64,000 bases of DNA, taken from NCBI GenBank assembly GCA_965153285.1, contig OZ229116.1. One strand, written 5' to 3'. The notes under the pieces are model-generated. The model searched no databases. It saw nothing but the letters and a program-made list of their open reading frames with translations, and was not told the DNA's origin. Below, piece after piece: positions 1 to 50,613 of this stretch. Numbering within the stretch: position 1 is the first letter of the stretch; each line of letters opens with the position of its first letter. A program made the translations under genes and the position numbers. The stretch is from Podarcis tiliguerta (Eukaryota).

Positions 1-982
1 TCTCATCTGAACAAAAGACAAACTCTCAGCTGTAGGGGATACAGAATCATAGTCTCTCTGGCGAACAACTGGTCCGATTTTTCACTTGCAGTGAAAAAGG
101 TATTTGTTACAGTCGAAAAGACGAAAGATAGGGAGAAACTCTCACAGAAAGTGCTTTAGCATTTTGCAACGCAGCTTCAATAAATGCATTTAAAACTCTT
201 AGTCATTACCAAGGCAAAACAGACCCTTTCAGAATGTTCATTTTCAAATGCAGACATGGGAACCTCCACCACACAGTGAAGAATGCACAATCTTCAAAAT
301 TGCTTAAGGCCTCCCAGCTCTATTCATTGGCCTTTCCAAAATTAGAACACCACAATCAATGCAGCAGTATTTCTAAGTAGAACCATTGTAACCCAAAGAC
401 CATGGTGTGGCTTTGAATGTCAGGGACCCACATACCAAGTAATTTTTAAGCTGTGGTGTTAAGGCAATTTCCAATAGTGAGACACCCAAGTACAGATTCA
501 CAGAACTCTGATGGACTCAGTGAGTGGACCATTTTTCTTAAGATGGGGTGCCTCATTCTTGATGCACTCCCGACTTATGATCCTTAGCACTTTTTCTTTC
601 CACCAAGCTTTCAAAAACATCAGAAAAACAAATATTTGACAACCTCCCCTGGAAAATCATTTAACTGCTGGATTTATTTTTCGGTTAGAAACTTTTTGCT
701 GTTTGTTAACCTAAATCTAAGTACCAGTAGTTTAAAAGCATTACTTCTTGCCAAATCTCCACAGGGTGAACAACTGCTAATCTTCCCAAGATTCTTCTAA
801 AATAGCCTATCTCCTTGAAGAATCTCAAATCCAACAAAATGCTTTTTAATTTACAAACTGACCACCTTAACACAAAGGCTGCCTGACATTGTCATCGCAT
901 CTGTGACCTCTATCCCTGGAGATTGTTACAGAATCACAGGGTGCTACACGACATAGTTATAGAACAGTATTTCATGCCTCAC

Positions 983-3433
983 CTCGTTTGGCTCTCGGGA
1001 AAGGCTGCAGGCCAGAAGTGTGCCTGTGCTGTTGATATCCTGCTGAGTGACTGGTGTAGCTATCCTGAAATTCCTCCCTTCTGAAAAGTGGGTCTGGCCA
1101 GGCCTTAGGAGGGTAAAAGGAGAAACAATATCTCCCCCAATGAGGGCTGTAGGGAATTCCATTTTTTCCTCCTGGCTCAAGCGTACTGAGAACGTGTCAA
1201 AGTGTCCTCCCACAGGAATAGAGTTCCTACCCTTCAGGTCGCTGGTCCAGCCCACATCTGAGTGTCTTCCTTTCAATCTTTTAAGACACTTCATAGCTAA
1301 AAACACAAAGGCCAGAGCAGAAAGTCCTGAGATTGTGATTAGAGCAATAATGAGTTGCAAGGTCAGGTGAGACAGCCCTTCTTGTTCCATGCTGGACTCT
1401 CTGAGGTCTGCTGTGCCCAACTCATGCTCATGCTCTAGATTAAGAATCAGAGTGGCTGTGGCAGACAGAGGTGGCTTCCCATTGTCTAAGATCTCAACAA
1501 CCAACTCTTGGGAAGGGGCGTCTTGTTCCAGGAGGGCTCGGACGGTTCGGATCTCTCCTGTGAACGCCGAGACTTGGAAAAGGCTTGGGTCTGTGGCTTG
1601 CTGCAGCTTATAAGAAACCCATGCATTCTGCCCAGAGTCTGCATCCACAGCTGTGACTTTGGTTACCAGGTAACCTCCTTGTGCAGAAAAAGGGACTGGC
1701 TGCTGGGCTAGGACCCCCTTCTTGGTTACAGGGTATACAACAAGAGGAGCATTATCATTCTGGTCTATGATGAAGATGGAGACAGTCACATTGGCACAGA
1801 GTGGAGGAGAACCATTATCCTTAGCTTGAATCTGGAAAACCAGTTGCTGGGTTTGCTCATAGTCAAATAAGCAGCCACTGTAGATAGTACCGTTCTCCAT
1901 AACATAGACATAGGAGGAAATGGGCATTCCATTTATGATATGCTCCACTAACGAATAAGACAGGTGTGAGTTCTGCCCCAGATCAGGGTCAAAGGCAGAT
2001 ATAGAAATGATTGGCAGCCCCAGAGCATTGTTCTCAGTTACAAGGGTCTCATATGCAGGCTGTGAGAAGTGGGGTGGGTTATCGTTCAGGTCAGATATAT
2101 TTATAAGGAAGTTTCTTTGACTGGAGAGAGGTGGAGAACCAGAATCCGTAGCTGTGATCATAACTTTGTACTGTGAGATTTCCTCCCGATCTAGGGGGCC
2201 ACTGGTGATCAAAGAGTAGTGGTTCTTGAAGGAAGGTACAATCTGGAAGGGGACATCTGCAGGGAGATGAAGCTGTACTTCTCCATTTTCCCCAGAATCT
2301 GCATCACTGACTCTGAGGAGCCCTGCTGTGGTACCTGGGGGAGCATCTTCTGGTATAGTGGTGGTGAGGGAAGTGAACCTAATGATAGGCTCATTGTCAT
2401 TCACATCCACTACCTCCACTAAGATGTTGCAGTGTGCATCCATGGAAGGTGACCCTTGGTCTTTGGCCCTCACATCAATTTCATACAATGTGTCATCTTC
2501 ATAATCCACACTTCCCAGGACTCTTATCTCCCCAGTCTCCTCATTAAGGCTGAACATTTTCCGGATTTTCTGTGGAGTGTGGCTGCTGAAGGAGTAGGAA
2601 ATTCTCCCATTTGCCCCCTCATCATTGTCTGTAGCTTGTAAATGTATCACAAGGGCCCCCACTGGGGCATTTTCTAGTAGGCTAACTTTGTACACCGACT
2701 GGTTAAAGACAGGTGGATTGTCATTGGCGTCTATGACTGACACGAGAATCTTTGCTGTCCCGGATTTAGCAGGAACTCCTCCATCCAGGGCTGTAAGCAC
2801 CAGGGGGTAGTGCTGCTGCTGTTCTCTATCCAGTGCCTTCTCTAACACCAGCTCAGGTTTGCTGCCACCTTTATGTGACTTAACACTGAGGCTGAATTGT
2901 CCACGTGGACTCAGCTGGTAGGTGCTGACTGAATTCATGCCAACGTCCAAATCTTCAGCACTTTCCAGGGGGAAGCGGGCCCCTGGCATTGCAGACTCTG
3001 CTATCTCCAAATGGGTGAGACTGGTAAGAAAAACTGGGTCGTTGTCATTCACATCCAAGAGCTCAACTTCCACACGATGGGAGGCTGTTGGGTTTGCAAG
3101 TAGGAGCTCCAGATAGAGCAGGCAGTGTAAGCTGGGCCCACAAAGCTGCTCTCGGTCCAGCCGTGCTTTCACGACCAAGACACCATTTGGCACCTTGGCT
3201 TCGAAGTACTTTTCAGCAGAGCCAGCCATGATCTGCAGCTGTCGGGAGACCACCCGGGCAGCATCTAGACCCAAGTCTTTAGCCACATCCCCAACAAAGG
3301 CCCCAGGAGCTAACTCCTCAGGAATCGAGTAACGGAGCTGGGTCATCTCTCCAGCACTCTGGAGAGAGACAGAAACCAAAAGCAAAGCTCTTACTTGCCA
3401 TGGCAGGAGTAGTCTTTCTTCCAGAGACAGCAT
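983..3433 (-). CDS. Protocadherin gamma C-type variable exon (C4/C5-like): signal peptide, EC1-EC6, TM, variable cytoplasmic domain
   Basis: Within ORF 944..3583. ATG at 3433 (MLSLEERLLLPWQV). Six cadherin repeats (DxNDN, LDRE, AxDxG motifs). TM LTLQLIIALITISGLSALAFVFL. Donor GAG|GTGAGG at 983/982, 817 codons. C4-like motifs (FDYEQTQ, NAWVSY, DLRESS) and C5-like motifs (WQV, QLRYS, RVEVE). Lies downstream of C3. Confidence 0.9.
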
Positions 3434-4149
3434 AATGTCGCCAAAATTTCCTCTTCCTTTGCTGGACCTCTGTCCTCTCTGATTCCAGCACAGCCAAGGA
3501 AACAACACAGAATCCCGGGTTAGATCGCGCAAGGGATGAGAAAGCGGCGCACCATCTGCATCTTTTCTCTGTTTTTCTTCCACAGAAAACAGCGGCGGTG
3601 CCTAGTCCGTATCGGAATCAAGAGGGGAGGAGCTTTGTTGTCCATCAAAGCAGATACAGGGCTCCTGGAATCAAGGAAGCGCCTGGCTGTTTGCAATGGA
3701 CCACCCATTCTCCCCCTCCCCAGCTCCAGCAATGGGGTGGGGGAGGTCTTAAAGCGCCCGTGCAAATGTTGAAGAAGAGCTGGGAGCCCATTCGCCAGCT
3801 GTCAGTGACTGGATTTCCCAAGATAATTATATGAACAATAAATCCTATGTCATTACAAGCTTTTGAATTCATTAATGAATGTCACAAGCATTTAAATTCA
3901 ATAATGAACACTCTTTGTTTGGAATGGTTGGGGTTATAAGCTAAACCAGCAAACTGCATATTTTGCAGATTTTTTAAAAAACAGAATGCAACAAACACCA
4001 GTGGCTGCACAATTAAGTGATATACTGCCATTTGCTGGATATAAGATCACGTTAAAAGACCCATTGATTGTCTGCCTGAATTTCCTTTAAATGAATGGCA
4101 TTCAATAACCGATGCAGGAGAGCTCTTCAAAGCTCATTCCCACTATGGC

Positions 4150-5700
4150 CTTTGTTCTCCAAATGGAGTATACTAAGAGTCTCTCCATATTTCCTTTCCT
4201 AAATTTCAGGAGTTTTGCAGCCAGTGCACAAAACAGAATAAACCATGACATCACAAAGGAAATTTTTAAGCCTTTGGAGTCAAGGGTTAGGAGGAGCAAG
4301 GTTAAAAAGAGTTTTATGAGCAAGAACCTGGTCCCTGATGGTCCCAACAAACAGCTTCCATAGTGGAGACAACTAAGATGTTAGGGAAGGGGTCAGGTCA
4401 AGGAGATTCATGGACTTCCTGGAAAAGATGAAAGAAATCTATGAATAGAAGTATTTTCTCTCCCCTAAAGGTAGGCAATGCCTTCTGAATGTTGTCATGG
4501 TAGACTTCAGTGAAGAGCTAGTTGAGGCACACTGCTGTTGAAAAAGTGGTGTCCTCTGTCTTATGTGCTTGCATTAGAAGCACCTGGATTTGCTCCTAGT
4601 GGCATCATGTGTGGATGAGAAGCTGGGCACCTCCCGTGTGTGAGATTTCACAGTAGAAATGAAACAGACAGAATGTATTTACGGTGATGGTCCTTCTCCA
4701 GGTGTGCAGATAATATAGGGCAATGATCACAGGTTGTTCGTATTGCATTTGTTATTCTGTTAGCTAGATTGATCTTCACTGTCCAGAGGAGTATTTGTGA
4801 CAAAAACCTGGTTTTGAAACATGGCCCATGGCTTTAAATGCAAGCATCTTGGGAATACTGGCAATCACTGCTGCTCCACTGCCTCTGGAGTGAGCTGCTT
4901 GCTATGTGCAGAGACATGCTCTCTGGCACGGACAAAGTTTGTTTTGACCAAGGTACAATCTTTTGGGTATTTGGGGACATAAAAAATGTGCACCACCATA
5001 TATTCCATGGCAAAGACGTCCACCTCATTCTAACATTAAACTTATAGCTTCTATTTTATAGGCAAGCCTCCTTTTCACCACAGCTGTGACTTCCCAATAG
5101 TCACATAATGCTGCATTGGGTGGAGTCCCCCTATATACGGAATTGCCATACTAAGTAAGGTGTTGCTCCCATATAGAGCCTTCAGGACCAAGCAATGCTC
5201 AACTTCCTTAATTCCCGGTCAATGTTTTTCAAAGAAGCAAGTTCAGATCTCTTCATATCAACAGACAAGAAAGTCTTAACAAGTAAGTGATGACGGAACT
5301 GCTGCTTGTTCTACTAACCAAGGAATGTTAATTTCTCTGACTCTAAATATCTCTCTGTGTCACAGGCCCTGGAGAGGATAGGAATCGTCAACACCTGTGT
5401 TTCCCACTTCTGCCTGATACATTTCCATGGATCTTTTTACATCCATTTTGACTCCATGAAGGAGCTTGACTCACATGTACACAGGGACTCACAGTTTACA
5501 GGTTCCTTTCAAAGAAGTAAAAATCTATTTCCACAGTTATCATCTCACTAATCAACTATTATATAGCAGTCGTTTGGGGATGCAATTTCCCCTTCTTTGC
5601 TATGATTTCTATGTAACCTAAACTCACCCTTCTAGTCCACTTGGACTAGTAATGGTCAGGGATTGGCACAGTGCCTGGGCAGAGAGCACAGAACAATTAG
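4150..5700 (-). pseudogene. PCDHGC4: Heavily degraded PCDHGC4-like variable exon relic
   Basis: Manual minus-strand translation gives collinear fragments in shifting frames: KEPVNCESLC, MEMYQAEVGNTGVDDSYP, SSSSVITYLL, KNIDRE, EHCLVLKALYGSN, YKFNVR..AME, LSVPES, EQIQVL..QA.DRG, and a TM-like SFVMSWFILFCALAAKLLK. These resemble recalled human gammaC4 segments (KNPIDREALC, LEMYRAEVEIVDVNDHAP, YEFDVR..AME, QARDRG). Contains stops, frameshifts and large deletions. Ends are approximate. Confidence 0.7.
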
Positions 5701-8700
5701 CAGCACCCACAAAACTGCTGCAGGGTGGAAGCACCTTGAGATTCTGGACTCAGGCTACATCAAGAGCAATTTTCTTCAGCTCAAGAGTTTGTATTTGTAT
5801 ATTACAATACACAAAATCACGATATCAAATACATTCCTTGACTTACTGATTCTGCCTTTTCTAATGCCTGAGGATACACATTAAAAAAACTTAAGGATAC
5901 TATTCTTTATAATGAATGTTCTTAATTTGATAATACCAATGTCTTTATACACTCTTGCTTCTCTTGAATTCACCTGCACATAACATACAACTTTGCAATC
6001 CTATTTATTTTCAGAATCCATTTAGTCGCAAATAGCACGCATACTGTACAGATATTTCTAACTAGTTATATACAGTCTTGGTTCACAGAGCTACGAATGC
6101 TGCATAGCAAGCTAAGTGGCTTTGAAAGATGCAAAGCCACTTGGCTTGGTTTAACTAACACACATGAATTATACTACAGGACACTGTGCTAAACTTCACA
6201 GGAAACAGTATTTGATGAGAAGCATTCAAATCAGTTCCTAATGCACACTTGTGCCATTTAACTTAATGGAATGGAAAAGAAATTCTGTATTCTAAACCCT
6301 TGCCTTTAATGAAATCACAATAAATATTTGGTGCAAAGGAAAACATTTCAACAATAGAAATGGGAGACCTTGTAATTAGGATTTGAGAAGAGTGGGGAGA
6401 CTGATATCTCACTTCAAAATCTGAAATGTGGTTGAGTTTGATTGCTTTAGACTTTTTGGACAGTCAATGACTATTTTCTAGGTTCAAGATTGCAGACAAG
6501 CAAGCAAGAGGGAAATTTTAAATGTTGGGGGTCAACATACAGCAAGTTTCATTACATTCTCCCATCCCCCTACACTAAACTCGTTTGTGAAAGGCAGCAT
6601 AAGATCTTGAGTGGGGTCTCTGGGCAGGGATTGTGTATGTTTATTGCTGTCAAATCTCATCCAGTGGCAGATGGCTAGACAGCATGATGTTAGCCAGCTC
6701 TTTCCACTCTTTGTCTTCCATTATCTTTACAGAAAAACAAATATGGTAACTTTCTTGCATTGCTCTAGATTAGATGCATTTAATCATAAAGTTTCTGATT
6801 CTCCTGTGTTGCTTTGGCTGCATATATGCTCATCTTAATTTTCAAAGTGAGATTTCTTCTTTCCAATCTCAACGTCCTATAATTCAGGGATACTTGTTAC
6901 AAACTAGAAGACCAGTGTGTTTGGCAGCAAACCCCACAGCATATGAAGCTGTCGCTTGCATTTATTTCAGTGCACAAAGCGCAGCAGGTCCTGGCCCCTT
7001 GCAACATATTTTCAAGCACATATGATTTTAATAAGTACAGCCTCCTCAACTGAAAATGTAATGGACACACTAAATGTTCACATTGTTTCAGTAATACGTG
7101 AAGGAGCCCTGATTATATCTGGTGAGAGTCTGCCCTGGTTTTGCATATTTTAGAGCCAGATGGCCTACTAATGAAAAGCCTCTCATTCTAACTTTTGTTA
7201 AAAACACTAAAGAAACTAATGGTTCTGCCTGTACAGATTAAGTGTGGGGTCTGGTGCAGCTTTAAGAGCACATCAGCTTAGGGTCATCGTATTGTGCTGG
7301 AATTGCTAATGCCTATTGACAGGACACACACGGACACACAAACACACCTCTCTTCCGCTGTCTCTTTTGCCCGCCCTATTTTTCTGATCATAGTCATTTT
7401 CTTAACAATCTTCCAGACTATGTAATTTTGGGTAGGAAAACGTAGCTAAAACAATTTCCAAGGATCTCAGGGTTCACGTGTCAACCATTTCAAGCAAAGC
7501 AACATGTATGGCAGTTAAGAAAGCCTAATTATGAATTGGTAAGAGCAATGCAACCCTTTTGGCATCAGAATAGTAATAATAAACAATAATAATTTAAATC
7601 TCAACAACAAATTAAAAGTACAGATGAAATCACTAACCAGCTATCGATGAATTAACATCATCATGAGCATCTTCATTATTACATTTATAAGGCTGCCCTA
7701 TAGCAGTTTTCTGGGTGGCTCACAAACAAAACCAAGCAGAATACAGCATATTAAAAACCTATGATGAATTAATTAAAAGTTGATGCACAATTTACAACTC
7801 AAGGTATAAAATAAAAGCAAGCTACATACAAAATATCAATTACTGTTGTGAATGTGTATATATATTTCCCACACAGCCGAAAGGTTAGGTACCACATTGC
7901 TCTAAAACATGTTCGGATATCAGATGCCAAATACTAAATGCCAAATTAACCAGGTACAAAGACTCAAAACCAGTTCACTGAAATGATGGCCCTGAAAGCT
8001 ATTCAACAAACTATCAGGGGTGAGAACTGGCCTGGAGCCAGACACTTTCTGGCAACCTCTCCTTTATTCTTGCAATCTCTGGGCTTCCTGGTCCTTCTTC
8101 TAGCACCCTCTCCACATAAAGCCGCAGTTTATCACTTTACCCTAAAACAACTTCCTGCCTATAGCATCTAATTGTGTAGCAGAATGCACCCTGAGCATGT
8201 ATCTACACTGCAGATTCAAACTGGTGCAGCAATCATTCCCAAGGAATTATGGGAATTGTGCTTCTGGCTCAGTTCTCAATGAGGTTGTACACCTGAGTCT
8301 GGGCTGTACCACTTCAGACTGCAGGTGGGGACTCAAGATGGCTGTATGCTCCTCCATGCCAGCCACCCCACAGTTAGGATCCATCTTCCTGACATCTAGC
8401 TTTGGCAGAGCTCTGAATTCTTTGTACGCAGGAACGTTCAAAGATGTGGGTTTTATCTGCAATCTGAAATGGTACAGCCTAGAAACAGATTAACCATCTT
8501 GGTGAGAACTGGGCCTCTGTGAGGAAATCTTGCAAACAAGACACACAACGTGCTCTCTTCAGAGTGAAAATGTTCATGAATATTTCAAAGGAAACTAGCA
8601 TGTACATACAATCCCAGCAATTAACATATTCACTGCCAGCCTTCTGCTGTTACACAATAACAAGATAAAATGAGTGTCGCACGAGTGCTACCTAATGTTA

Positions 8701-9434
8701 TCAGTGATCAGAATATGAGAGGAGCCCAGGAATGAAGGGAATTTGATGCCTCCTGGGCAGTTTGCCTATGCCTGGTATTTTAGGGGGGGGGGAAGACTGT
8801 TGGACAGAATGGGGATGGGGTGCAAGACAACAACATTTAAGTCAAGCTGAAAGTAGCCTGCCACTTGTGATTCCCAAAAGAAAGCTGAAGCCTGAAACTT
8901 TAGGTAAAACCTTGAGACTCAGAAACCCTAAAGCACAATAGCTTTGTGCAGCTGGTGGAAGAGTCAGAAAAAAGCTTACCTATGTAGGTGTTGCTTTGTA
9001 GGCATTGTGAGAAAGAACCTGGCTATTGTTGTTGTTATTACTCCTCCTTCTCCTCTCTACACAGTAGCTTTTCTGGATTGCAGGCAAAATCTCTAGTTAA
9101 TATTCACTTTCATACAATAACATATTGCATTGCCTTTTCACTTATTGACTTTTGATATGAACTCTATGATAGGGATGCCTATGTTTTCCTGGACATTCAA
9201 CAGGGAACACATTATCTTAGTATCGTAGCATCTCTACTAGCTCCCACCTGATCAGGGACAACATGGGGGGGGGGGGAGCTGAGCCCCTCCAATTAAGCAG
9301 GGGACTGGGCCCCCTCAATTTTATGCGGCCTGCAAGCCATCAGAAGGCAATCCTGTATAGGGAAGGGAAGTTTTTTATATATGTTGGAAGCTGCCCAGAG
9401 TAGCTGGGGCAACTCAGTAAGATGTGTGGATATA

Positions 9435-9693
9435 CCGTATTTTTCGCTCTATAAGACGCACCAGACCACAAGATGCACCTAGTTTTTGGGGGAGGAAAAC
9501 AAGAAACAAAATATTTTGAATCTCAGAAGCCAGAACAGCAAGAGGGATCGCTGCGCAGTAAAAGCAGCAACCCCTCTTGCTGTTCTGGCTTCTGGGATAG
9601 CTGCGCAGCCTGCACTCACTCCATAAGATGCACACACATTTTCCCTTACTTTTTAGGAGGGAAAAAGTGAGTCTTATAGAGCCAAAAATATGG
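9435..9693. mobile_element. Non-autonomous Tc1/mariner (Tigger-like) MITE
   Basis: Imperfect TIRs CCGTATTTTTCGCTCTATAAGAC / GTCTTATAGAGCCAAAAATATGG, TA on both sides, internal hairpin at about 9521-9598. Confidence 0.8.
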
Positions 9694-11353
9694 TAAATAG
9701 TAAAATTATCATTATGGAATGGGACGTCCCTATTTTCATTGGAGAAATGTTGGTATGACAGAATGCCCAAGCCTCTTTGCATACTTTTCACATTTTGCAC
9801 TTGCTATAGGGTGGGGTATTCTTTAACATCTACCCACACTTATTGTGTAATAATATTTACAGAAAATAACCTATAGTGAGTACCTGATCTTAGACCAACT
9901 CACCACAGGAAAGATGCATCCTGTTTTGTAGAAAGAACAGATTGGCTAAATAACAGAAATTCCAAGGACTAGAAAATGAAACAAGCAGGGCAAAAAAGTG
10001 CACTGGATGGAAGAGGGAAATAGCAGGTCTTTAAGACACCAGTTATAGCCTGGTGTCCAAACAACTTACTCATCAACCACAGCTCAGACGTCACTCATTT
10101 GCTAAAAACACTGAAAGGTGGGGCTAGCTGGGCTGGCTCACTCACTTAGAAGAGTACTCACACATTTTGCTTGATAACTTCATTTCTAGAAGGGCTAGGC
10201 TCTTACATTTTTTAAATGAAAACTCAAAGTCTGGGTCCTCTGACAAGCATAGGCCCCAGAGCAGTATCCGCAACCCCCTCGATTTCCTAAAATAACAAGC
10301 ACAGGGCCCTTCATTGGGAACAGAAGCACCAAACCAAGTGGCAACAGCTGCCACCTTCTCCAACGGTCCCAGGGCCTCTGGGCCTCACTTCAACATAGTG
10401 GTGCTATATTGGGGCCCAGAAGCACTGAGGGGAAATGAAAACGGCATTTCTCAGCATCAGGGCAAGGGAGCACCATCTCTCCTCACCACCCCCATGCTGC
10501 TGCCCATCCTTGCCTCCACCTGCTGCGGCCTCCAGGTAAACTAATTTGGGGGTGCACACCTGGTGGCTGGTCCTGTGTGTAGGCCTCCTTCTGAAAGGCA
10601 TCCATGCTCAGGCTCTTCCCTGGAAGTCTGCTGCCATTGCTTCCATAGAAAGTGCCATTTCCCCCTACCAAATTAGTCTGAATGAGAAGCCATCAGAGCC
10701 CTGTTCTAATGTCTCTTCTTCTGCTACTCCTACTCCTACCCCTACTCCTACTCATGTTTGGCTACATAGAGAATAGGTTCAATTCCACCATACACATAAG
10801 GAAAAGGAATAAGTCTTACATTTCCACCCCATCATAGATGAATATCAAACAGACATACATCAGAGGCTAGGCCCCCAAGGAAATGTTGAAGGTGATCTCC
10901 CTTTAGCGTCTTGAAGAAGCACCCAAGCCAAAAGGCCTCCCAATACATATCCAACCCATTATTTACACAGCATTCCTGTTTCCTTGCGTATGATTTTTCA
11001 TAAAACATAAACTTACTGGGAGCTATCATTCTTCAGAGGCAATGACTATGCAACCCAACAACAGCCGACCACATTGATCTGACCCAGAGCAGAAAGAACA
11101 AACAAACCACCCAACTCCATGTAATGTAGGGAGGAAACAACACATGCACAGGAGTTAAACAGGCGGGGCTCTTAATCATGCTATTAAATGACACAGCACT
11201 AGATGGAGACAGAAAACAGGAAAAAGAATGTGTTCTACAGGAACTACCCTGTTTCCGGGTAGGAAGACATTGAGTGGTCTGCCTTTAAGTCAACTTAAGC
11301 TCAGAGCTGGGATTTCCCAACTTTGCTGGAGAAGGACAACAAGCATACATTAC

Positions 11354-13798
11354 CTCAGAGGGCACCAGAAGCCTCTTATTTGTGCTTATTAGCTGGTTAT
11401 ATATTGCAGGGTCACATCTTGTGATAGTGCTCTGGCGGCTCCCCATAGGGCTGGGAGCAAAGGGCATTTTGTACAGAAGTTCACTCTGGCGAGAGTCCGT
11501 GGTGAGGACCTGCTGGTAGAAGTTTGGAGGAGTAAATCCACTCCGCACAGTGTCTATGTGGTTGAAAGGCCCCGGGGTTCTATAAAGGGAGCTTCTGGAG
11601 GCTTTGAATATATCCTTGGATTGCCTCCACTTGTAAAATTTATAAATCCCCACCCCAACCACGGTGACAAAGAAGGCCACTGAGATCAAGATGACAGCAA
11701 TGATTAAATAGAAAGTCAAGTGCTTCTTTGTTTGGGGTGTAGTGGACACAGCAGTCAAGTCTGTCAGTGTCTCCCTAGATGTCTCTGCTACATCTACAGC
11801 AAGGGTCACTGTGGAGGACAAGGCAGGCTCCCCATTGTCTTTTATTAAGATGAGCAATGTTTGCTTGCGAGAATCTTCCTCTTGCAGAGAACGAGCTGTG
11901 CTTATCTCCCCAGAATGCAGCCCCACAGTGAACAGCCCTGGGTCAGTGACCTGAAGGAAGGAATAGGAGAGCCAGGCATTGTAACCAGAATCTGCATCCC
12001 AGGCCACAATTTTTGTGACCATGTAACCAGGGCTGACTGTGGGTGAGATGACTTCTGAGAGCGAAGAGCTGTTGTTTGAGTTTGGGTATAAGAGCCTGGG
12101 TGCATTGTCATTCTGATCTGTGACAAAAACATTGACAGTGATGTTAGTGGCGAGAGGCGGGAGGCCAGCATCACGAACCTGGACCACTAGCCTGAACTCC
12201 ATGGTGCCCTCATGGTCCAAGGGGACTAGGACATATATGCTGCCATTTTCCCGGTTAATAGAAAAATACCTGCCCGCCAAGTCTCCCGAGGACATGGGAC
12301 TATCCAGGATGGAGTAGGAAAGGTGGGAATTCCGGTTCAGATCCGGGTCAGAGGCACTGATGTTAAAGATCAGGGTCCCTGGAAGGTTGTTTTCCTCCAC
12401 ATACACATCATAGGAGGATTGTGGAAATTTAGGAGGGTTGTCATTTACATCAGATACTTTAACCAGTATTTGCTTTTCTGCCATGAGTGAGGGTGTGCCT
12501 GCATCCTGAGCTGTGATGGTGATGTTGTACTCAGAGACAAGTTCCCTGTCCAAGGGTCCTTTGGTCTGTAAGGTATAATAGTTTTTAAGGGAAGAGCTGA
12601 GGGCAAAAGGGATCCCAGAAGGTATAAAGCAATTTACTAGGCCATTATCACCAGAGTCCTGATCCGTGACACTCAGCAACGCAATCACAGTCCCCGGAGC
12701 CGCGTCTTCTGGTATTGGGCTGTACACCGACGTCACTGTTATTTCTGGGGTGTTGTCGTTCACATCCACAATCTCTACCAGCACTTTGCAATGAGCGACA
12801 CCAGGATTTGAACCCTTATCTTTTGCCTGGATATAAATCTCATAAAATTTGGCTTCTTCAAAATCCAGCAACCCCTTCAGCCTCAGTTCTCCAGTGGCAG
12901 AGTCTAGGGCAAAGAGCTGTCGGATTCTGGCAGGGGTGTGACTGCTGAAAGAGTACACAATCTCCCCATTGGGGCCTTCATCCAGGTCGAAAGCTCTGGT
13001 TTGGACAACCAGGGTGTTCAAGGGTGTGTCTTCTTTCAGGCTGGCTCTGTAGATGGACTGGTTGAAGACAGGGGCGTTGTCATTTGCATCCAGGACGTCA
13101 ACCAGCACCTGCAAGCTGGCCGATCGGGGTGGGGTCCCTCCATCCATCGCCGTGAGAACCAGCTGCACTTCCCGCTGCTGCTCCCGGTCCAGCTCTTTCT
13201 CCAGCACCAGCTCCGCATACTTCGTCCCGTCGCCTCGCGTCTGCACGTCCAGCACGAAGTGCGGGTTGGCGCTGAGCTGGTAGGTCTGCAGAGAGTTGCT
13301 TCCCACGTCGGGGTCCTGCGCGCTCTCCAAGGGGAAACGCGCTCCGGGGGTCACCGACTCGCTGATCTCCAGCTTCATCTGCTTGCTCTGGAAAGCCGGG
13401 TCGTTGTCGTTGACGTCCTGGATCTCCACGGTCACGCCGTACAGCACCAGCGGGCTCTCGGCCACCACCTCCAGGCTCAGCGCGCACGGCGAGAGGGCCC
13501 CGCAAAGTTCCTCGCGGTCGATGCGCTCGCTCACCAGCAACTTCCCGCTGCCCAGGTCCACCTCGAAGTACTTTCGTCCGCCGCCCGACACCACGCGGAG
13601 GTTCCTGGCGGGCAGCTGGGCGAGATCCAGGCCCAGGTCGCCCACCACGTTGCCCACCGAAGAGCCCCTGGGCATCTCCTCGGGGATGGCGTAGCGCGTG
13701 GCGGCGAGCGCCCGCTCCGAGACGCCCAGCCACAGCCAGAAGCCCACGACGGGCAGCCATCGCGCTCTCGGCCGGCTCCTTCCCGCGGCGCCTCTCAT
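11354..13798 (-). CDS. PCDHGC3: Protocadherin gamma C3 variable exon
   Basis: Within ORF 11285..13813. ATG at 13798. Six EC repeats. C3-diagnostic cytoplasmic stretch YKWRQSKDIFKASRSSLYRTPGP...LTTDSR...SRQSTITRCDP. Donor GAG|GTAATG at 11354/11353, 815 codons. Confidence 0.95.
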
Positions 13799-14560
13799 CT
13801 CCCGGCCTCGCAAAGTTTCTCTCTTTTCGCGGGAGCGGCGGGGAGGTCCCTCTAAAAGTTTTCAGCCGTCCCTTCCATGCGGCCGCGACCCTGCCCGGTC
13901 CAGGCTCGCCTCGCGCGGACTTTGGGGGTCGGGCATTGCTCGGCGGCGCGGCGCTCCGGCGGCGGGACTGCGCTCCGTCTGTTGCTGGCGCTCAACTCGC
14001 GGCGGCGGCGGCGGCGGCAGCGTCCCACTTCGCGCTGCTTCGCCGCCAGCATCGCCGGGTCAACAGCGGCGCGCAGAGTCGCGACCATTAACTGCAGGAG
14101 AGGCCGCTCCCGCTCCGCCTCCCCGGCTCGCCGCCGGGACTCCGAGGCACGAGGCGCACGGCTCCATCCAAGCTGGGCCGGCGGGGCCCGCTGACTTCTT
14201 TTTTTTGGGGGGGGCGTGGGTGTTCCTCGGTGAAAGGCTTGTGGAGGCTGCCCCCGGGGCTGCACAGCCCTCCCCGCTCTGCCGCCGCGAGAAGGAGCGA
14301 AGGGAAGCGCGGACCGAGGAGGCAGCAAGGGCGCATTGTTCTCGCTGGGGAGCGTGGAGGAAGCGCTGGACCCCGGACGCTTCCGAGGGATCGGGAGAGA
14401 GATGCCTGCCTGCCTCCGGTGCCTCCGCCTCTGGCTCCCTCGCTTACGCTCTCCCGGCGTGGCGGCTCCGTGGGGCAGCCCAGTGCTCCCCATGCACGGC
14501 ACTGCTCAGGGAGAACCCACAAGCCCCCCAAGGCGGCGTAAGCTTCCCCTCTCCCTCTGC
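13100..14560. promoter_or_regulatory. CpG island over the PCDHGC3 promoter and 5' part of the exon
   Basis: Very high GC and CpG density against AT-rich flanks, with a (GGC)n run at about 13999-14018. Confidence 0.9.
14060..14096 (-). promoter_or_regulatory. CSE / CTCF site of the PCDHGC3 promoter
   Basis: Minus strand TGCAGTTAATGGTCGCGACTCTGCGCGCCGCTGTTGA: TGCAGT upstream module plus CGCT box, same spacing as the other promoters. Confidence 0.8.
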
Positions 14561-29734: not shown

Positions 29735-31240
29735 TGAGTCCACATCCATGACCACTACCTTAGTGACCAGGTAGGTAGCCTGGCTCAGAGGAGCGAGGGG
29801 CCAGCTCTATCCCTATGGAACCATCAGTGGGAGGGGAAGGGTAAAGGATTTGGGGAGCACTGTCATTCTGGTCCAGGATGAAGAGAGTCACTGAGACCTT
29901 GGAGCTGAGTGGTGGGGAACCTCCATCCTTGGCTCTCCATGGAACTTAATCTCCTGGAACTTTTCATAAATGAAAGAACATCAGGCATAAATAACCCCAG
30001 ACAGAATTAATAGAGTTATATAGACAAATTACTGATCTCATTTTTAATAAGTTATTCTCAGTCTGGATAAGTTGTTCTTCATGGACCTCACAACCCTGCC
30101 CCAGGACTGGATAGCTGAGATCCTGGCTGGCTCTCAGAATCTTCCTCATCTCTTTGGGGTCCACAGGCTCAGAGAAGAAGGTGAACCAGGCAGGAACATA
30201 AGAGTTGCCGCAGTGCCTGGCTAGCCGCTGCAGAGGCTACTCATGAGAAGGGATCAAATGGAAACAAGTCCTGCCTGAGATCCTGGAAGGGGTGGATCCT
30301 CTAGCTCCTGTATAAGCTCCAAGTCTAAGTTCCTTCACTGCTGAAGCAACAGCTCCCATCTCCTCTTCAGTCTGCCTGACGCACAGAAACAGCCACCACC
30401 TGGCACCAAACTGTAATGATTGCTGATCGATTTCTTCAGTTTGAAAGGGAGACTGTCAGAACTAAACTCAGGATTTCTCCATGGATTCTTTAATCCTGAT
30501 TTTGCATGTTTAGAAGGGCTTCTGTTGTCATCTTGAGAGAGATTTCTTTGGGGGGTTTTCTTTGGCAGTACAATATGTGAGGATATGGCTAATTAAAGAG
30601 CATAGCCATACACAGGTAACAAGGATAACAAATATTAACAATCTCCATATTGAGCCTGGACTCACTGTATAATGGAGGCTTGTTTAAAGCCCAAGGCACT
30701 GTCATTGCATCAAGAAATGTGACTCAGGTTTTTGAAGTTACCAGACCTTTCTGACTCTCCTCCTTAATATACTGTGAGGAGCGGATGGTGAGCAGCTTCC
30801 TCTTTGTGGTTAAGAATTCTTTCTATCACCAGTTCAACATATCTGGCACCTCCAGCTGCTATTTTCATGTCCAGGAAAAAAATATTCTTTTAGCTGATTT
30901 TGTAGTTCTAGAGAGAATTGGTTTCCAAATCAGTGTCTTGTGCCTTATAGATGGCAAATTGGAGTTCTCTTGCTTTATTCTCACCAACTTTTGTTTCTGG
31001 TTCTTCTGATGAGAACCTGGGCCCATTGTCATTAATAGCTATCATTTCAATTTTCATTGACCCCTCCACATATAACCAAAAAATTCATGACACACTTCAT
31101 GGCCACAAATTCCTCTCCATGTATTTTGTCTGTGGTGTGTAAATGACCAGCTTCAGAGTAAAATACTGAGACCTATATTGTGAAAACTATGTACACCTCT
31201 CTCTGAAAGATCTCTTATATCCAGTCTCATCTCATTTGTG
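29735..31240 (-). pseudogene. Degraded protocadherin gammaA-like variable exon
   Basis: EC1 remnant LDIRDLSERGVH..SQYFTL..GHLHTTDKI (about 31230-31100). EC1/2 KIEMIAINDNGPRFSSEE...AQDTDLETNSL*NYKIS* (about 31055-30890). EC5/6 tract at 29756-29960 very similar to 48651-48845, with a 4-bp GTAG duplication. Stops, deletions, and non-cadherin sequence at about 30060-30500. Confidence 0.88.
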
Positions 31241-32597
31241 CAGAAGAAGCATGCACTCTACTACTGAAGCCACAGCTATCCCTTTAATTACTGTTAGAGC
31301 TGACCATGATTTGGCCACAACACCATTTTAAAGAGCCCCAGAATACGAGGAAAGCACTTTTGAGTATGTGTAGACTGCCTGTCTTTTATTGCTAAGTCAC
31401 CGCAATAAACTTTCACGGGTCTGGTGTTGGTGGGAAGTATAACAGGGCACAAGTAAAGTTGGGTTCCAAAATATTGGTTGGGGTAGTACACAAAGAGTTC
31501 TAAAATATGAACAGATTATTTTAAACAGATTTTACGCAAGTGCAGCATTGAAAATGTCTCCTGATACTACCTTCTTCATAGACTCCTATTTCTATGTGGA
31601 GGTTTGTGGCCAACATCAATATACTATTAATTAGCAAGAAGAGATCACTTCCCTATCTCCTGACAGCTAAAAAAAATAGTAACTTTTTAAAAAGCAAAGC
31701 TAATCAAGTAAAATTGCTACCTTATTTAATGAAAGTGGATATAACAAACACGCTTCTCAGATTGTTATGAGCTCCTCTTTGGATGGCAGTACTTGGTTAC
31801 TTCATTCTGCTAAGCATAATTACATGTCAGGAAGTCCAATACATTTTAGCGAAGCATACTTCCAAGTACATATGATCATGAGAGCAGCCAATGAAAATCA
31901 AAGTTATTTCTAGGAAACAAACCTAAACAGAAACAATGCTAAAGTAAATGATTCACAGTGAGCTCAGTGGTCACTCTAGATAAAGAAAAATGAGTCATTG
32001 CAGCAAGAGATGCCCACCTCATTGCCTCTTTCTATGGTTGTTCACTGATTATTCCATCATGTGTAGAATTCATGCACATTCACCAATGTTTGGGCTGTCT
32101 CTGGCCCTGTCCAACATCTGCATATTCAGTGGAGCATTGGGAAGAAGAACCTACACGTTTACAGCTGTATGTGCTTAGGTGTTAACCTGGCTTGGGTGTT
32201 ATGACTGAACAAGGAATTGCGGTATTGTAAGGGTGCTGCATTATCAGGGTTCTCAATTGTGAGGAGGCTTCTAAGAGCTCAGTGCAGTGGATGGAGTCAG
32301 CTGACTGCAGGGCTGGCAAACAGGACCCCATGCTCCTTACTTGTGTTACGATTCTTTTCAGGTATAATAAAAAAACCTCTTTGTACTCAGTTCCTTTTGC
32401 ATGGATTCAGCCTCTCCTGCACTGAAGCCATTATGCCACACCCTAGGCATCTATTTTTTGTTACATCACATCTCCATGGCAGCCACTTTGTGTCAAGACA
32501 CGCCCTTATAGCAGCCATTTGTGGCTGGTGCCCACAACACTCTCTCCAAATTCCAAATGTGCTTACTGGACAAAAAAGCCTGGCTACTCTGCTTTAT

Positions 32598-32949: not shown

Positions 32950-34128
32950 TACTCTGCTTTATATTCACTATGCAAGAAAGGTCATTATTTGATTTGAGCA
33001 TTATCAGTTTGGACATTGTCCTGTGCAAATGTCAGAAAAAGTGAATGCATTACCTATCTCTATCTCTATCTCTAATCATCTATATCATTTGTATCTATAT
33101 CTATATCTGTATCATTCTGCAAATTCATCTTGGATGAATGGCAGATTTTTTCAAAAACCTATGTTTATTCTAAGATAGGTTTCCTTTCATTTGGAGCTCA
33201 AAAGTCAAACCTTCCTCAGGTGAAGTACAAAATGCAACATGAAAAGAATCCCAGGCTCACTAGATTTTTACTCCATTCCCATAAAAGGTCGCTGGAATTC
33301 CTCGAACATACTGGGTTGAAATGAAGTTACCTTTTCTCTTATGAAGGTTTTATTCCATATTCTGATTGTAAAACATGCCACAGGAAATGTGAACATGGAT
33401 GGCTCTCTTGCTAAGGAGCATATTTCATAGTCTGTAAGTTCTTTTCCAGGTGCTGTGATCCCAGCACACATATGATCCACACAATATCTGTTGTTGACAC
33501 ATGAGCAGCCCAGACTATTCTCAATCACAGCCATGTGGTTGTGTGAACCAGCAATGTGTGAACCAGCAATAAATGCAACCAAACAAAATGTCCATGATAA
33601 GGGAATATCATAAAATGCTGACTTCTATATTTGTGTATTACTAGTTCACAACATGTAGTTATATTATCCATGTCATCATGGGTGCCTTTGTTGTAAAGCT
33701 TCTGCTAGGATGGCATATGTGTGGGAGAATGCTATTCTATTAGATGCTATTAATTTTCAGGGATAGAAAACCATATGGATAGAATTAATCTACTCAACAG
33801 ATTGGTAAAAACCAAGGGAAATTATTCAATCTATAGCTACATTGATATAGCCAGATCACAACACAGGCAGAAAAATAATATGCTCAGCTTAATTTAGGAA
33901 AGGACTCACTTGTAAGAGTGCCATGAATCTAAGTACCAATTGGATGTGCTAAGTAAGCATGTTCAGAATGCCTCAGTGGCATGCCATTCAGGCAGGTCTA
34001 AGTACTGGTTCTTCCCATATAAAGCATCAGACACTTGAGCAGATAATGATCTAAAAACAGTAGCTCATAATACCTATGAGGAAGAAAGATGTAGTGCCTA
34101 CATCACAGTTTCTGAAAGCAAAGCTTAC

Positions 34129-36545
34129 CTGCTCACCAACCTCCTCTTTGGCACTGGCATCCCCACAGTTGCCATCCACAAGAACCACCTGAGAGCTATC
34201 ATTGCATAGCAGGTTTTCTGCCACCTGGATATGGGGTTTCGGGAAAGAGATCTGCTCTTTCCTCATCTCTGATGATAGGCAGAGTTGGTAGGAATAAGGT
34301 AAAGTTCCTTCTTCATAGTTTGGTGGAAATATGACCTGCGCCTTAGAAAAAGCATTAGGTTCGAAGCATTGGAATAATTTGGGATTTCCTGATTGTCGAA
34401 GTTTCATGACAATGACCAGTATCACCGTCAGGAGGAATAAAAATGAGATCAATGCCAAAGCCAGCACCAAGTAAAACTGGAGGTCAGAATGATGCTCTGT
34501 GTCACTGGATTGCCTAGTCATTTCCGGAAGTGCCTCTTGGAAGTTCTCGGCAACCACGAGGTTGAGGACCACAGTAGCTGAGAGCGGAGCCTTCCCATTG
34601 TCCTTCACCAAGATGACCAGCTTCTGTTTCACAGCATCTTTCTCCAGAAGGGCTCGTGACGTCCTGATCTCTCCCGTGTGGGTCCCAATGGTGAAGAGGG
34701 CCGGCTCCGTGGCCTGCAGCACTTGGTAGGAGAGCCAGGCATTGTGCCCAGAGTCCGCGTCCACAGCCACCACTTTGGTCACTAGGTAGCCTGGCTCTGC
34801 CGAGTGAGGAACCATCTCAAACAAGGCAGAGCCCTCAGCGCCTAGAACAGGATACAGAACGCGAGGGCTGTTATCGTTCTGATCCAAAATGTACACCCAC
34901 ACGGTGGCGTTGTTGCTGAGAGAGGGAGAGCCGCCATCTTGGGCCTTCACTTGGATCTGAAACTCCCGGAATTGCTCATAGTCAAAGGAGCGCTGTGCAT
35001 AGATAGTTCCCGTCTCAGAGTTGATGGAGACGTAAGAGGAGAGAGGCAGCTCCGCCATGTTGCTGTTGAGGATGGAGTAAGTGATACGTGAGTTGCGGTC
35101 CAGATCCGGGTCTGAGGCTTTGATGGAGAAAATGGAGGCACCTGAGGGATTGTTTTCAGGCACAAAGACACTGTAGGTTGATTTTTCAAAGGCAGGGGGG
35201 TTGTCATTGATGTCTGAAATCTGCAGGGAGATGGTTTTGTTGGAGGAGAGAGGGGGGCTACCTTTGTCGGTGGCCGTGATGGTGATGTTGTATCCTGAGG
35301 CTTTTTCTCTGTCCAAAGGACTATCTGTGAGAATTTTGTAAAAATTGTTAGATGAGGATAAGATTTTAAATGGTACATTACCTTGTAGATAGCATGTAAT
35401 TTTTCCATTTTCTTCAGAATCTTTATCCTTTACATTGATAACAGCAATTACTGTCCCAGGAACAGAATCTTCAGGAACTGGACTAGATAAGGAGGCAAGA
35501 ATGACCTTTGGGCATTGTCATTCTCATCCAGAACCTTTATTTCTATCTTACAGTGAGCTACTAACCCTCCTCCATCTCTTGCTTTTATTGCCATAGTGTA
35601 CTTTTCTGTTTCCTCAAAATCAAGATTCTCTGTATTCATAATTATTCCATTTTGTGCATCTATCCTAAATTTCTTGTAGACTTTTTCTGCTACTTTACTG
35701 AAACTATAACTGATCTGACTATTTGAACCTTCATCTCTATCAGAGGCTGCAACCTGAAGTATGGGAGACCCAGCAGGGGAATTTTCCCTCACACTGACCT
35801 CATAGACCTCTTGAATGAAGACCGGTGGGTTGTCATTGGCATCTGTGACATTAATCCATATCTGCGCAGTCCCAGTTTTTCTGGGTTCACCCCCATCCAG
35901 GGCCGTAAGGATCAGCTGAAGGGAGTGCTCACTTTCCCGATCCAAAGGTTTCTGCAGCACCAATTCTGCATATTTATGTCCATCCAGACTATCTTGAACC
36001 TCCAATGTGAAAAATTGATTTTGGCTTAACTGGTAGTCATGAAGGGAATTCTTCCCAATATCAGGATCTTCAGCTTTCTCGAGGGGAAATCTGGCACCTG
36101 GCAATGTGGATTCAATTATTTCAAGCCTTATATTGTCATCCAGGAAATGCGGTACATTGTCATTAATGTCCTGAATTGCTACACTTACATGGAAAACATT
36201 TAATGGATTTTCAACTAAGGCTTCAAAATTAATGAAGCACTGTGTGCTCTCTCTGCACATTCCCTCACGATCTATCCTCTCATTCACATACACATTTCCA
36301 TTTTCTGCATTGATACTGAAATATGGTTTTTTACCTTCAGAAATGATATGCAGGTTTCTAGTCTTCAGTTCTCTGGCATTCAGTCCCAGATCCTTGGCAA
36401 GATTTCCCACAAAGGACCCCTTTGCCATCTCCTCAGGGATGGAATAGTGAATTGACTCTGAGATCTCCCAGCAGAAGGAAGACATTAAGAACAGAAGCAA
36501 TGCCCTGAAGCTTTCTCTAGGAATAACTTCCATCTTCATCTCCAT
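34129..36545 (-). pseudogene. Protocadherin gammaB-like variable exon (Y') with a single 1-bp frameshift (young pseudogene/allele or assembly indel)
   Basis: ORFs 35448..36545 and 34051..35316 join if one C is restored in GAC AAT GCC (C)CA AAG (G run at 35510-35512 on +). This gives 806 open codons. Donor CAG|GTAAGC at 34129/34128. CSE intact. Confidence 0.88.
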
Positions 36546-44571: not shown

Positions 44572-46446
44572 AACTACACTCATAATGTTTGGTTATGAAT
44601 AGATTTCATTTATTTTCTAACTGGCCTCAATCCAGCTCCCTTTCAAAATGGGATTGGTGGCTCTGGCAGATTTTCATTATTCCCCTTACACATACATGCA
44701 AAAGAAGCACAAACTATCCCTTTTTAAATGCAATGGAAGGCCCTTTGAGATACTAGGTGTGGATAAACTTCTGGATAATCCCCCCCCCCCACTTCATTCA
44801 GTTCCCTTCAGCAACAAAGTGAAGAATGGGCTCTCTTTTCCCTGCTACTCTTCTCAGTAACCTCAGTTCATGGTAGATGTGGGCAGAGATGGCAGTTAGA
44901 GTTTTGCAGACATATTCAAAGGAAGATTCCTCTTTTGCCTTCCTTGTCAATAATGGGTGTAGCTTCTTCATGCACTAGGACTTTGACTGAGGAGCTCCCA
45001 GAAGAGGCCAGTGGCGCTCTCCAAGGTCTTCAGCAAAGGAGTCAGAAGACAGCAGAGGAACACAGAGGCTAGAGCTACTTTCAGTGGCTTTCTAGATAGT
45101 ACTGTGAAAATTGAGATTGCATCTGGGACTGTAGTTTCACTTACATGAAGATGATACTCATATCCACTTTTTATTGGTAATATGGTGATATTGTTTTTAT
45201 ATATACTTGTGTACAGTTATAACAAGTATATTTAACGTTCCCCCATCATATTACATTTCTGTGTTGCACAAATGAACTGTGCCATTAATTTGAAGCAGAG
45301 AATTGAATCCTGTCATGGTAAACAGTGTGGGGTGGTTTCATGGTTTGAGAGTTTCTTTATCACCAGTAGTTGCTGATCCTTGGTGATACTTCCAAGTGAA
45401 GAGCCTTCCACCATTTCCTCAGGGAAAAAGTGGCGAATCTTCAAGGAGTGGTAATGAGTTGACAATGTTAACAGATAAAAGAGACAGCGTGTGATAAAAG
45501 ATTTGTCAGTCTAAGGTGTTAGAAGGGAGATCTTTAGATTCTGAGGTATAAATAGGACCAATGTGAGCAATTTTGTTAGCAGGTTTTATTGAAAATATGC
45601 CACCGTGGTCTTTAGGAGGTAGCTTGCTTTGGGTGGTGGGGATAGATTGAGTTGTAACTTCCTGTCAACAGCTAAAACAATCCTGCGTGGCACCCCCATG
45701 CAATTTCAGCGAACAAAGAATCTCTCTTTGCTGCTCCTAAGACAAATCATAGAAATGCAAACGGGCCTTGTGCCATGTTCAGACATATTCAACAAAAGCC
45801 TGACATTCTTTATAAAGTTATCTAACTCCATCCAGAAATGAAAGATTTTCATTGCTCTCATAGCTTCTCTCATTCATATTGCAGAAAGTTTTTTTTTTAA
45901 TCATATAAAATACAAGGATGATAAATATACAATTACATATGGCTTGAGCTAACTGGAGGCAACTATAGGAGGACACACATCAAAACCACACCCCCCCCCC
46001 CCACCGTTGGGACTTTGCAGAGTTATGCGGCCACTGCCAGATCCACAGCCCTGCTGTTCACATTAGCCATAGCAGAATATGGAGATCCAGAATGACCTGG
46101 TCCGAGTCTGTTGCATGACTGCAGCAAGACTGGCTCAGGATACAGCAGTCACTGGGCCAGCTCAGCCATGTCCCTGCCCTCAGAATGCCCCATTTGGGGC
46201 TCTCCATTGGCTCCTGCACATCCAGCAGGTAGAAGGTGATGTCAGCTGAGCTGAGAGAGCCAGGCAGGGGGACCTCTCTGCCTAATCCAACTCTGTTCCC
46301 TGGCTCAGTGGAAATGGGGGTTGAATTGCTTTGTGTATCATCACTGGCTTATTAAAATACCTGTCTGACCTCTTTAGACTATCAGATGATGCCAAATACT
46401 ATTGCTCAAAATGTGAAATAAATTTGCCTTGTTATAATATCCTACT

Positions 46447-46783: not shown

Positions 46784-48011
46784 AATATCCTACTACACTA
46801 ATATTTAACACACCATTGTTTTCTATATGATGAAATTCTGGGAGACTGAACCAAGGGAAGGGAAAGGGCAGGGAGCCATTCCCCACTGGCAGAGACAATA
46901 CTTGGCCATTATATGGCACTTCTGAGTGTTAGGCCAGTGTTATTTATTGCACTGGTATTACAGATTTGCAGCTGAGAATGAGAAAAAGTGACATGCCTAA
47001 TGAGGGCAAAAGTATATGTGGCTTTAAATGTTTTATTACGCTGAATGAGAATGCATTCTTAATGGAAATAGATGTCACTGGGGGAGCAGGATCATGACCA
47101 CGGGTGCAGAGACAGTATCAATGGGACCATTCTTCTTCTCAGTGCAAATAACGAAGTGGGTTAGGATTTTTCTTGCAACCCTGCTCTTGCTGCACCATCA
47201 AGGGATCTATTTCCATTTTTAAATGCAATAAATCATTTAATGTCACCAAAAAGCGCCAAAATTCAAATTACAGATCGCATGCCTTTCAGCTCACATACTT
47301 GGCAAATAAACTAGATGAGTTCTTACTTAGTATACAGGTTTAATTCCTGATATCTCCAGTTTTTTTAAAACATCTAATAAAACTAGGCTGAGAAACACCT
47401 GAGCTGTTACCTACTGCTCATAAGGCTGGATACTACTAATTAGATAGATTATTGACCCTGTTTAGTAAACACACAACTGATCTATCCATATGAGTAAAGA
47501 CATAAACTATTTCAGACACAGAATTAGAGGGCAGTAAATAAAAGTTCAAATATTTTGGGAAGCCTGGATTTTCCACGGATACTATTATTTGAGAACTAAA
47601 TAACCTTTCCAAGAGTCAAGAAGGTCAAGAAAGAAGCTCCGAAAGAAGCATTCAATTTAAACAAGAGAACCATCACAATCATGCAAAAATTGCTGAACAA
47701 GAAAATATATGAATATCTCTAATATTTGTCTCATGGTTGCTCTTTAAGCACTTAAGCTCTTGTGGGACAAGCTGTTTACAATTTTCCTATCTCTACATGC
47801 ATTTGCTTGTAGCAGAAACAACCACATATACAAAAAGTAATCTATGTGAACTCCCAAACCTCATTTTATCTGAAGAGAACAAGTATAAATAAGAGAATAT
47901 GTCTCCAGTTCCATTTCTTCAGAACAAGTGCAAAACAAATAATATAAATGGCATTAACGTCTAACTGAAAATATAAAGTGAAAAACCTTTGATTTGTTAG
48001 CAAGACTTCAC

Positions 48012-50423: not shown

Positions 50424-50613
50424 TCCTGGTCTGATATGAAGCTGTTGGGGAGATCTGTGATTCAGGATGACGGAGTGTTGCCAGAAAAGGTCTTGCAGCT
50501 GAGATTCCCAACGCAAAAATGTTCACTGAAACTCTGATCTCTCAGCATTTTCTGAGCTGAGCTGCTCATCTGGGAAGGCTGAATTTCTCAGTGCATTTCT
50601 TAGCCTTGGTTGG

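Follow-up and report, generated by a model that had tools for sequence, protein, structure and literature searches.

Within a fast-turning gene cluster, C-type protocadherins stand out as stable members with broad expression, and their gene order in the mammalian gamma cluster is C3-C4-C5. Neuronal survival in the mouse requires gamma-C4 as the sole gamma isoform (PMC6957209). For the anole, Jiang et al. (2009, PMC2764143) describe five gamma-c exons, c3 to c7, together with 14 pseudogenes in the cluster. According to the same paper, anole c3 and c5 are orthologous to human genes, and Ac-gamma-c4 has its ortholog in coelacanth Lm-gamma22 and lacks a direct human ortholog. Direct orthologs were not found there for anole c6, for coelacanth Lm-gamma21 and for a human gene printed as 'Hs-gamma-c2', which is apparently human gamma-c4. 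The lack of a direct gamma-C4 ortholog in a lizard has been on record since 2009. Differential loss is proposed there as the main evolutionary mode of gamma-c genes, and the text of the paper is silent on any pseudogene in the slot after gamma-c3 (PMC2764143).

The window (the whole stretch of 64,000 nucleotides analyzed here) covers the 3' part of the protocadherin-gamma cluster of a lacertid lizard. The cluster lies on the minus strand, as do all eight large cadherin ORFs in the ORF listing, and a scan of the window revealed no runs of N. Its last exon (983-3433) shares 98% identity with a protein of Podarcis raffonei. The exon at 11285-13813 was assigned by similarity to gamma-C3: over EC1-3 it scored 431.6 bits against mouse Pcdhgc3, far above any other EC1-3 chain, and its identity amounts to 64-66% with cow gamma-C3 and to 71-76% with bird gamma-C3. 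In the interval between the gamma-C3 exon and exon 983-3433, a search for interspersed repeats gave a single 47-base match and a search for tandem repeats only a trivial hexamer run, and no Rfam families were found in positions 1-14500.

Table 1. Coordinates of the features between and including the last two intact variable exons of the window
Feature	Position	Strand	Remarks
Gamma-C3 ortholog exon (assigned by similarity)	11285-13813	minus	upstream of the relic; surrounding G+C ~0.57
Robust part of the putative relic (EC1 end and EC2)	5162-5517	minus	3 frameshifts, 1 stop, 5 gaps
KEPVNCESLC	5479-5508	minus	literal fragment
MEMYQAEV	5405-5428	minus	literal fragment
SSVITYLL	5277-5300	minus	literal fragment
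LVLKALYGSN	5162-5191	minus	literal fragment
YKFNVR	5029-5046	minus	literal fragment
YKFNVR piece (~EC3)	5023-5055	minus	collinear, profile positions 313-323; score 23.6, null level alone
EC4-like part	4621-4971	minus	suggestive, collinear; core 4677-4883, profile positions 380-444
Possible EC6-like trace	4482-4654	minus	collinear, profile positions 620-676; 33.2 vs null mean 33.7
Probable 5' UTR of exon 983-3433	3434-3794	minus	contig coverage
Next intact C-type variable exon	983-3433	minus	817 codons, GT donor at 982

Between these two exons, in the orientation of the genes, lies what is most probably a real remnant of a further clustered-protocadherin variable exon, a remnant and no gene, of which EC1-EC2 can be recovered; we put the probability of this reading at about 0.8. 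The earlier note had read cadherin fragments by hand in this region, and its literal fragments are present on the minus strand in mixed frames, with no long ORF at 4150-5700 (Table 1). We used a custom local alignment of DNA against position-specific profiles, in which frameshifts are allowed and scores are given in half-bits. The first profile aligned with 5517->5168 on the minus strand at profile positions 84-217 (64.4 half-bits), and a balanced profile of six clades aligned with 5517->5162 at profile positions ~82-217 (70.5 half-bits), where 42 of the 117 residues (36%) were identical to its consensus; the plus strand of the region scored 37 in the same alignment. Five of the hand-read fragments fall inside this segment. 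The maximum was 55.7 among 800 dinucleotide shuffles (mean 35.7, s.d. 4.0) and 49.9 among 168 real-DNA nulls, which consisted of the plus strand and reversed intergenic stretches of the same window; all of them fell short of the relic. The frameshift-aware profile alignment of this segment is significant. Seven different profiles gave z values of 3.5-9 for the segment, and single proteins gave higher scores, namely 87.3 for turtle gamma-C5 (z=14, 40/118 identical) and 85.6 for a C-type protein of the skate. The matches fall at conserved EC1-EC2 motifs (K-E..E-LC, DRE and LVL.AL.G), and Y.AEV..VDD..P of the relic was aligned with Y.VEV.DVNDNAP. Known relics in the same window, taken as positive controls, scored 80-450 with this method. 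Minus-strand stretches scanned at ~5800-11100 never exceeded a score of 50, which bears out the claim that this is the first cadherin-like sequence downstream of C3.

Beyond EC1-EC2, the evidence becomes weaker. The EC4-like core (4883->4677) scored 46.6 with the first profile, a value reached by none of 200 nulls, and 36.0 with the balanced profile, reached by 56 of 300. With exon 983-3433 as the query, residues 346-460 aligned with 4971->4621 (32/108 identical, score 53.8, z ~1.7). The piece contains G.G..., PLD.E and D..P.LS and appeared in the same collinear place from three queries, with one of which it was significant; its similarity makes it suggestive that it belongs to the relic. The collinear series of fragments that had been proposed holds firmly for EC1-EC2 and suggestively for the EC4-like part, whereas the EC3-like YKFNVR and the EC6-like trace are at null level, and a proposed transmembrane-like end also stayed at null level in the profile search and found no support. 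The signal peptide and EC1 start were sought upstream of 5517 (profile positions 1-83) and were likewise at null level (92 of 200 nulls reached the score). The full set expected of a variable exon (signal peptide, EC1-EC6, TM segment and splice donor) is absent from the relic. The proposed compression by deletions agrees with the space available: ~1.37 kb lie between 5162 and 3794 where an exon would need ~1.8 kb, so deletions are required.

The relic would thus be what little survives of a dead clustered-protocadherin variable exon, situated between gamma-C3 and exon 983-3433, now non-coding and lying ~1.7-2.1 kb upstream of the start codon of the latter, with the remainder of the exon beyond EC1-EC2 presumably deleted or decayed. 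It could be seen as the physical trace of gene loss or turnover inside an otherwise conservative C-type block. Against an old dead exon, it should be considered that the solid part comprises only ~120 codons, that the frame path through its middle takes one of two forms according to the query, and that a duplicate which was only ever a fragment would look alike. In a decay simulation, the score of the relic fitted ~0.4-0.55 substitutions per site, under a simple model with substitutions, block deletions and indels ten times rarer than substitutions. Neutral rates in squamates lie around 1-2.5e-9 per site and year. The age is most likely a few hundred million years, a rough figure that depends on the simple decay model and on the neutral rate assumed. 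At ~0.5 substitutions per site, a promoter conserved sequence element of ~20 bases would be unrecognisable. A dead protocadherin exon by itself is ordinary; located in the C-type block, the relic offers a fixed anchor for reconstructing the C-type genes of the amniote ancestor and the losses in each lineage.

The intact exon downstream of the relic defines its setting. Orthologs of exon 983-3433 are 80-85% identical in seven named squamates and ~76-77% identical over EC1-3 in two turtles; among the homolog matches listed, there was no mammalian or bird ortholog, and snakes were absent from the named orthologs. Its variable cytoplasmic domain as a query matched squamate orthologs only and therefore provided no link to any mammalian isoform. 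Over EC1-3, the exon is about equally far from the structures of human gamma-C4, mouse gamma-C5 and alpha-C2 (~330-370 bits), reference ortholog scores being 432 bits for C3 and 497 bits for turtle C5 against mouse gamma-C5, and in the tree it fell in a clade with the coelacanth protein P0118 (support 0.96). On these similarities, we assign it to the Ac-gamma-c4 type of squamates, turtles and coelacanth, neither gamma-C5 nor a clear gamma-C4 ortholog. The identity with gamma-C5 implied by Ensembl and NCBI names was rejected (340 bits to mouse gamma-C5 over EC1-3 vs 497 for true turtle gamma-C5); true gamma-C5 is a separate exon in the rattlesnake and turtle models, followed by c6- and c7-type exons. 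Public names for the orthologs conflict, being gamma-C4-like in Podarcis and Tiliqua and gamma-C5-like in five other squamates, and Ensembl names the anole ortholog 'subfamily C, 5'. A separate observation concerns the last C-type unit of the turtle (c7-type, residues 342-842 of model P0105), whose best matches are the non-clustered delta-protocadherin structures 6vg1 and 6vg4; both outscored any clustered protocadherin chain.

With regard to expression, contigs of run X1 (regarded as RNA by guess only) covered 911-3794 at a depth of ~9, with none at 3855-5233 and thin patches at 5277-5855. Two raw RNA-seq runs contributed a few reads, all on exon 983-3433, in an orientation that fits minus-strand RNA in most stranded libraries. 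These data suggest that exon 983-3433 is expressed and that its 5' UTR measures 360 bases or more; given this probable 5' UTR, the relic would lie upstream of the transcribed unit of its neighbour, inside the intron of the upstream isoforms. An X1 contig extends into the intron for 72 bases beyond the splice donor at 983 (to 911) and continues with 28 letters unlike the window, which may reflect RNA that had not been spliced, the presence of DNA in the run or a sequence difference of the related species.

We then considered which isoform the relic had been. When the alignment path was fixed, non-C-type exons never came out best in 2000 bootstrap replicates of the solid segment, and did so in 0.1% once the EC4-like piece was included. 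The replicates were divided among the C-type clades. When the path was re-optimised for each sequence, the median scores were 62 for fish C-type, 57 for the C5 group, 55 for c6, 49 for the 983-3433 type, 48 for C3 and 47 for non-C sequences. Clade profiles aligned with the relic gave z 7.8 for the C5 group and z 7.9 for non-C exons. In a FastTree phylogeny, the reconstructed relic formed a branch 1.8 long, sister to all others after midpoint rooting, a placement that is uninformative, and the residues kept by the relic are mainly family-wide. Overall, the relic leans towards the C-type in these alignments; the lean is weak, because the non-C profile scores as well as the C5 group and the tree placement is uninformative, and it may partly reflect the sequences that built the path. 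Among the sequences compared, the best matches were turtle gamma-C5 and C-type proteins of skate and shark. Turtle true gamma-C5 stood at 87.3 vs 41-55 for the other turtle paralogs, a lead that relies on an alternative frame path through the central part of the segment, whereas snake gamma-C5 (59.7) was level with the other snake paralogs. Since the skate and shark proteins score as high as turtle gamma-C5, the signal may simply favour slowly evolving, consensus-like sequences.

In the best surviving alternative, although one we regard as rather unlikely, the relic would come from a duplicate, either lineage-specific or fragmentary, that has since died. At no time would it have been an ancient single-copy C-type gene, and it would represent ordinary turnover of the cluster. 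Fragmentary relics are common in the window (e.g. 45512->45376 at profile positions 1-51 and 37979->37789 at 661-723), only EC1-EC2 is solid, the space is too small for a full exon and the non-C profile scores well, all of which speak for such a duplicate. However, the neighbouring exons are the worst matches of all (37.7 for exon 983-3433 and 46.1 for lizard C3, both at null level), and the relic is therefore no recent copy of either, an origin that was tried and rejected. In addition, with its collinear EC4-like trace the relic seems to extend beyond a 5' fragment, and the decay goes far beyond that of the other relics in the window (40-91% amino-acid identity).

Several of these other relics were located on the minus strand. 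A large protocadherin pseudogene occupies 29735-31241 (profile positions 48-600, score 452), within which tblastn aligned two pieces with exon 47997-50516, 29772-29936 at 91% identity and 30680-31081 at 40%. The fragmentary EC6/TM relic at 37789-37979 matches residues 715-770 of the same exon at 78% identity, and a weak exon-start relic at 45376-45512 (signal peptide and EC1 start) scored 64.2, as high as the relic at 5162-5517. The variable exon at 34051-36545, also on the minus strand, consists of two long ORFs with a single frame change near 35451-35517 and is either a young pseudogene or the result of an assembly error.

A more specific proposal is that the relic is the dead ortholog of mammalian gamma-C4, which is essential in mouse and human and whose survival function would be covered by another C-type exon in squamates; we consider this improbable. 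The slot directly following gamma-C3, taken by gamma-C4 in mammals, is here taken by the relic, and in the coelacanth the same slot contains an additional gene, Lm-gamma21; in Jiang et al. (PMC2764143), Lm-gamma21 and apparently human gamma-c4 are both left without a direct ortholog. The best tetrapod match of the relic is turtle true gamma-C5 by the wide lead given above, and C4 and C5 cluster together in published trees. It is also in favour of this proposal that all sauropsid C-type exons tested fell below ortholog-level similarity to human gamma-C4: C3, the 983-3433 type and C5 gave ~1.1-1.2 bits per residue against the human structure 7jgz, compared with 1.4-1.5 for true C3 and C5 ortholog pairs, and the c6- and c7-type units, taken from fused models, yielded no outstanding match to 7jgz.

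On the other hand, the preference of the earlier note for gamma-C4 over other isoforms is conjectural, the residues kept by the relic being mainly family-wide, the advantage of gamma-C5 needs the alternative frame path and disappears with the snake protein, and skate and shark match equally well. The comparison also covers the cluster within the window, and gamma-C5 itself lies outside it. Moreover, exon 983-3433 also lies between C3 and C5 and could be the diverged ortholog of mammalian gamma-C4. The description of the locus in the earlier note as the canonical gamma-C4 position is not supported: the mammalian C3-C4-C5 order fails here, with an intact C-type exon following the relic, true gamma-C5 being a different exon in snake and turtle, and five gamma-c exons in the anole (PMC2764143). 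It could equally be that mammalian gamma-C4 came from the slot of the relic, which would make the relic its dead ortholog, or that gamma-C4 is the diverged 983-3433 ortholog and the relic another lost gene. It is possible that the squamate lineage lost its gamma-C4 ortholog; present evidence does not tie that loss to the relic. An ancestral amniote array of C3, C4, the 983-3433 type, C5, c6 and c7, from which squamates lost C4 (the relic being its corpse) and mammals lost the 983-3433 type, c6 and c7, is a doubtful scenario on the similarities at hand. If it were true, lizards would do without the one isoform on which neuronal survival in the mouse depends, or would have replaced it by another C-type isoform.

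Several standard searches gave no signal. With the window's own exons as queries, tblastn against 3600-11280 reached a best E of 0.48 (2.2 inside 4150-5700), and the same search readily detected true relics elsewhere in the window. A protocadherin HMM searched with hmmsearch on all stop-to-stop pieces gave a best E of 17, Pfam returned zero families at E<=10 on ten pieces carrying the hand-read fragments, and BLOSUM-based alignments that tolerate frameshifts, both local and chained, remained at chance level in 4150-5700 when the exons of the lizard itself served as queries. We attribute these blanks to low sensitivity, since the lizard exons perform worst as queries for the relic and slowly evolving proteins match it far better; in simulated decay, relics at >=0.5 substitutions per site were mostly missed by paralog queries. 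The idea that the similarity arose by chance and that there is no relic, to which the blank searches would lend themselves, is very improbable in view of the shuffles and real-DNA nulls (Gumbel estimate from the shuffles ~1e-4), the significance reached with seven profiles and with numerous individual sequences, confined to the gene strand and placed at conserved motifs, and the sensitivity that accounts for the blanks.

The probable remnant of a variable exon can finally be compared with the described systems. Like mammalian PCDHGC4, it takes the first slot after gamma-C3 and shows a weak C-type, C5-like lean; unlike it, an extra intact exon lies between this slot and gamma-C5 in sauropsids. 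It occupies the same relative slot as coelacanth Lm-gamma21, which sits between the gamma-C3 ortholog Lm-gamma20 and Lm-gamma22, if the coelacanth genes are numbered in genomic order; the putative link to the relic is one by gene order. The neighbouring exon 983-3433 groups with coelacanth P0118, just as Ac-gamma-c4 does with Lm-gamma22 (PMC2764143). In comparison with the anole pseudogenes described by Jiang et al. (PMC2764143), half of which have a single-base indel, the relic is far more decayed, and it differs from them in lying inside the C-type block, right after gamma-c3. It resembles them in being a dead variable exon in tandem and in gene orientation, and in this respect it would fit the differential-loss model proposed there.
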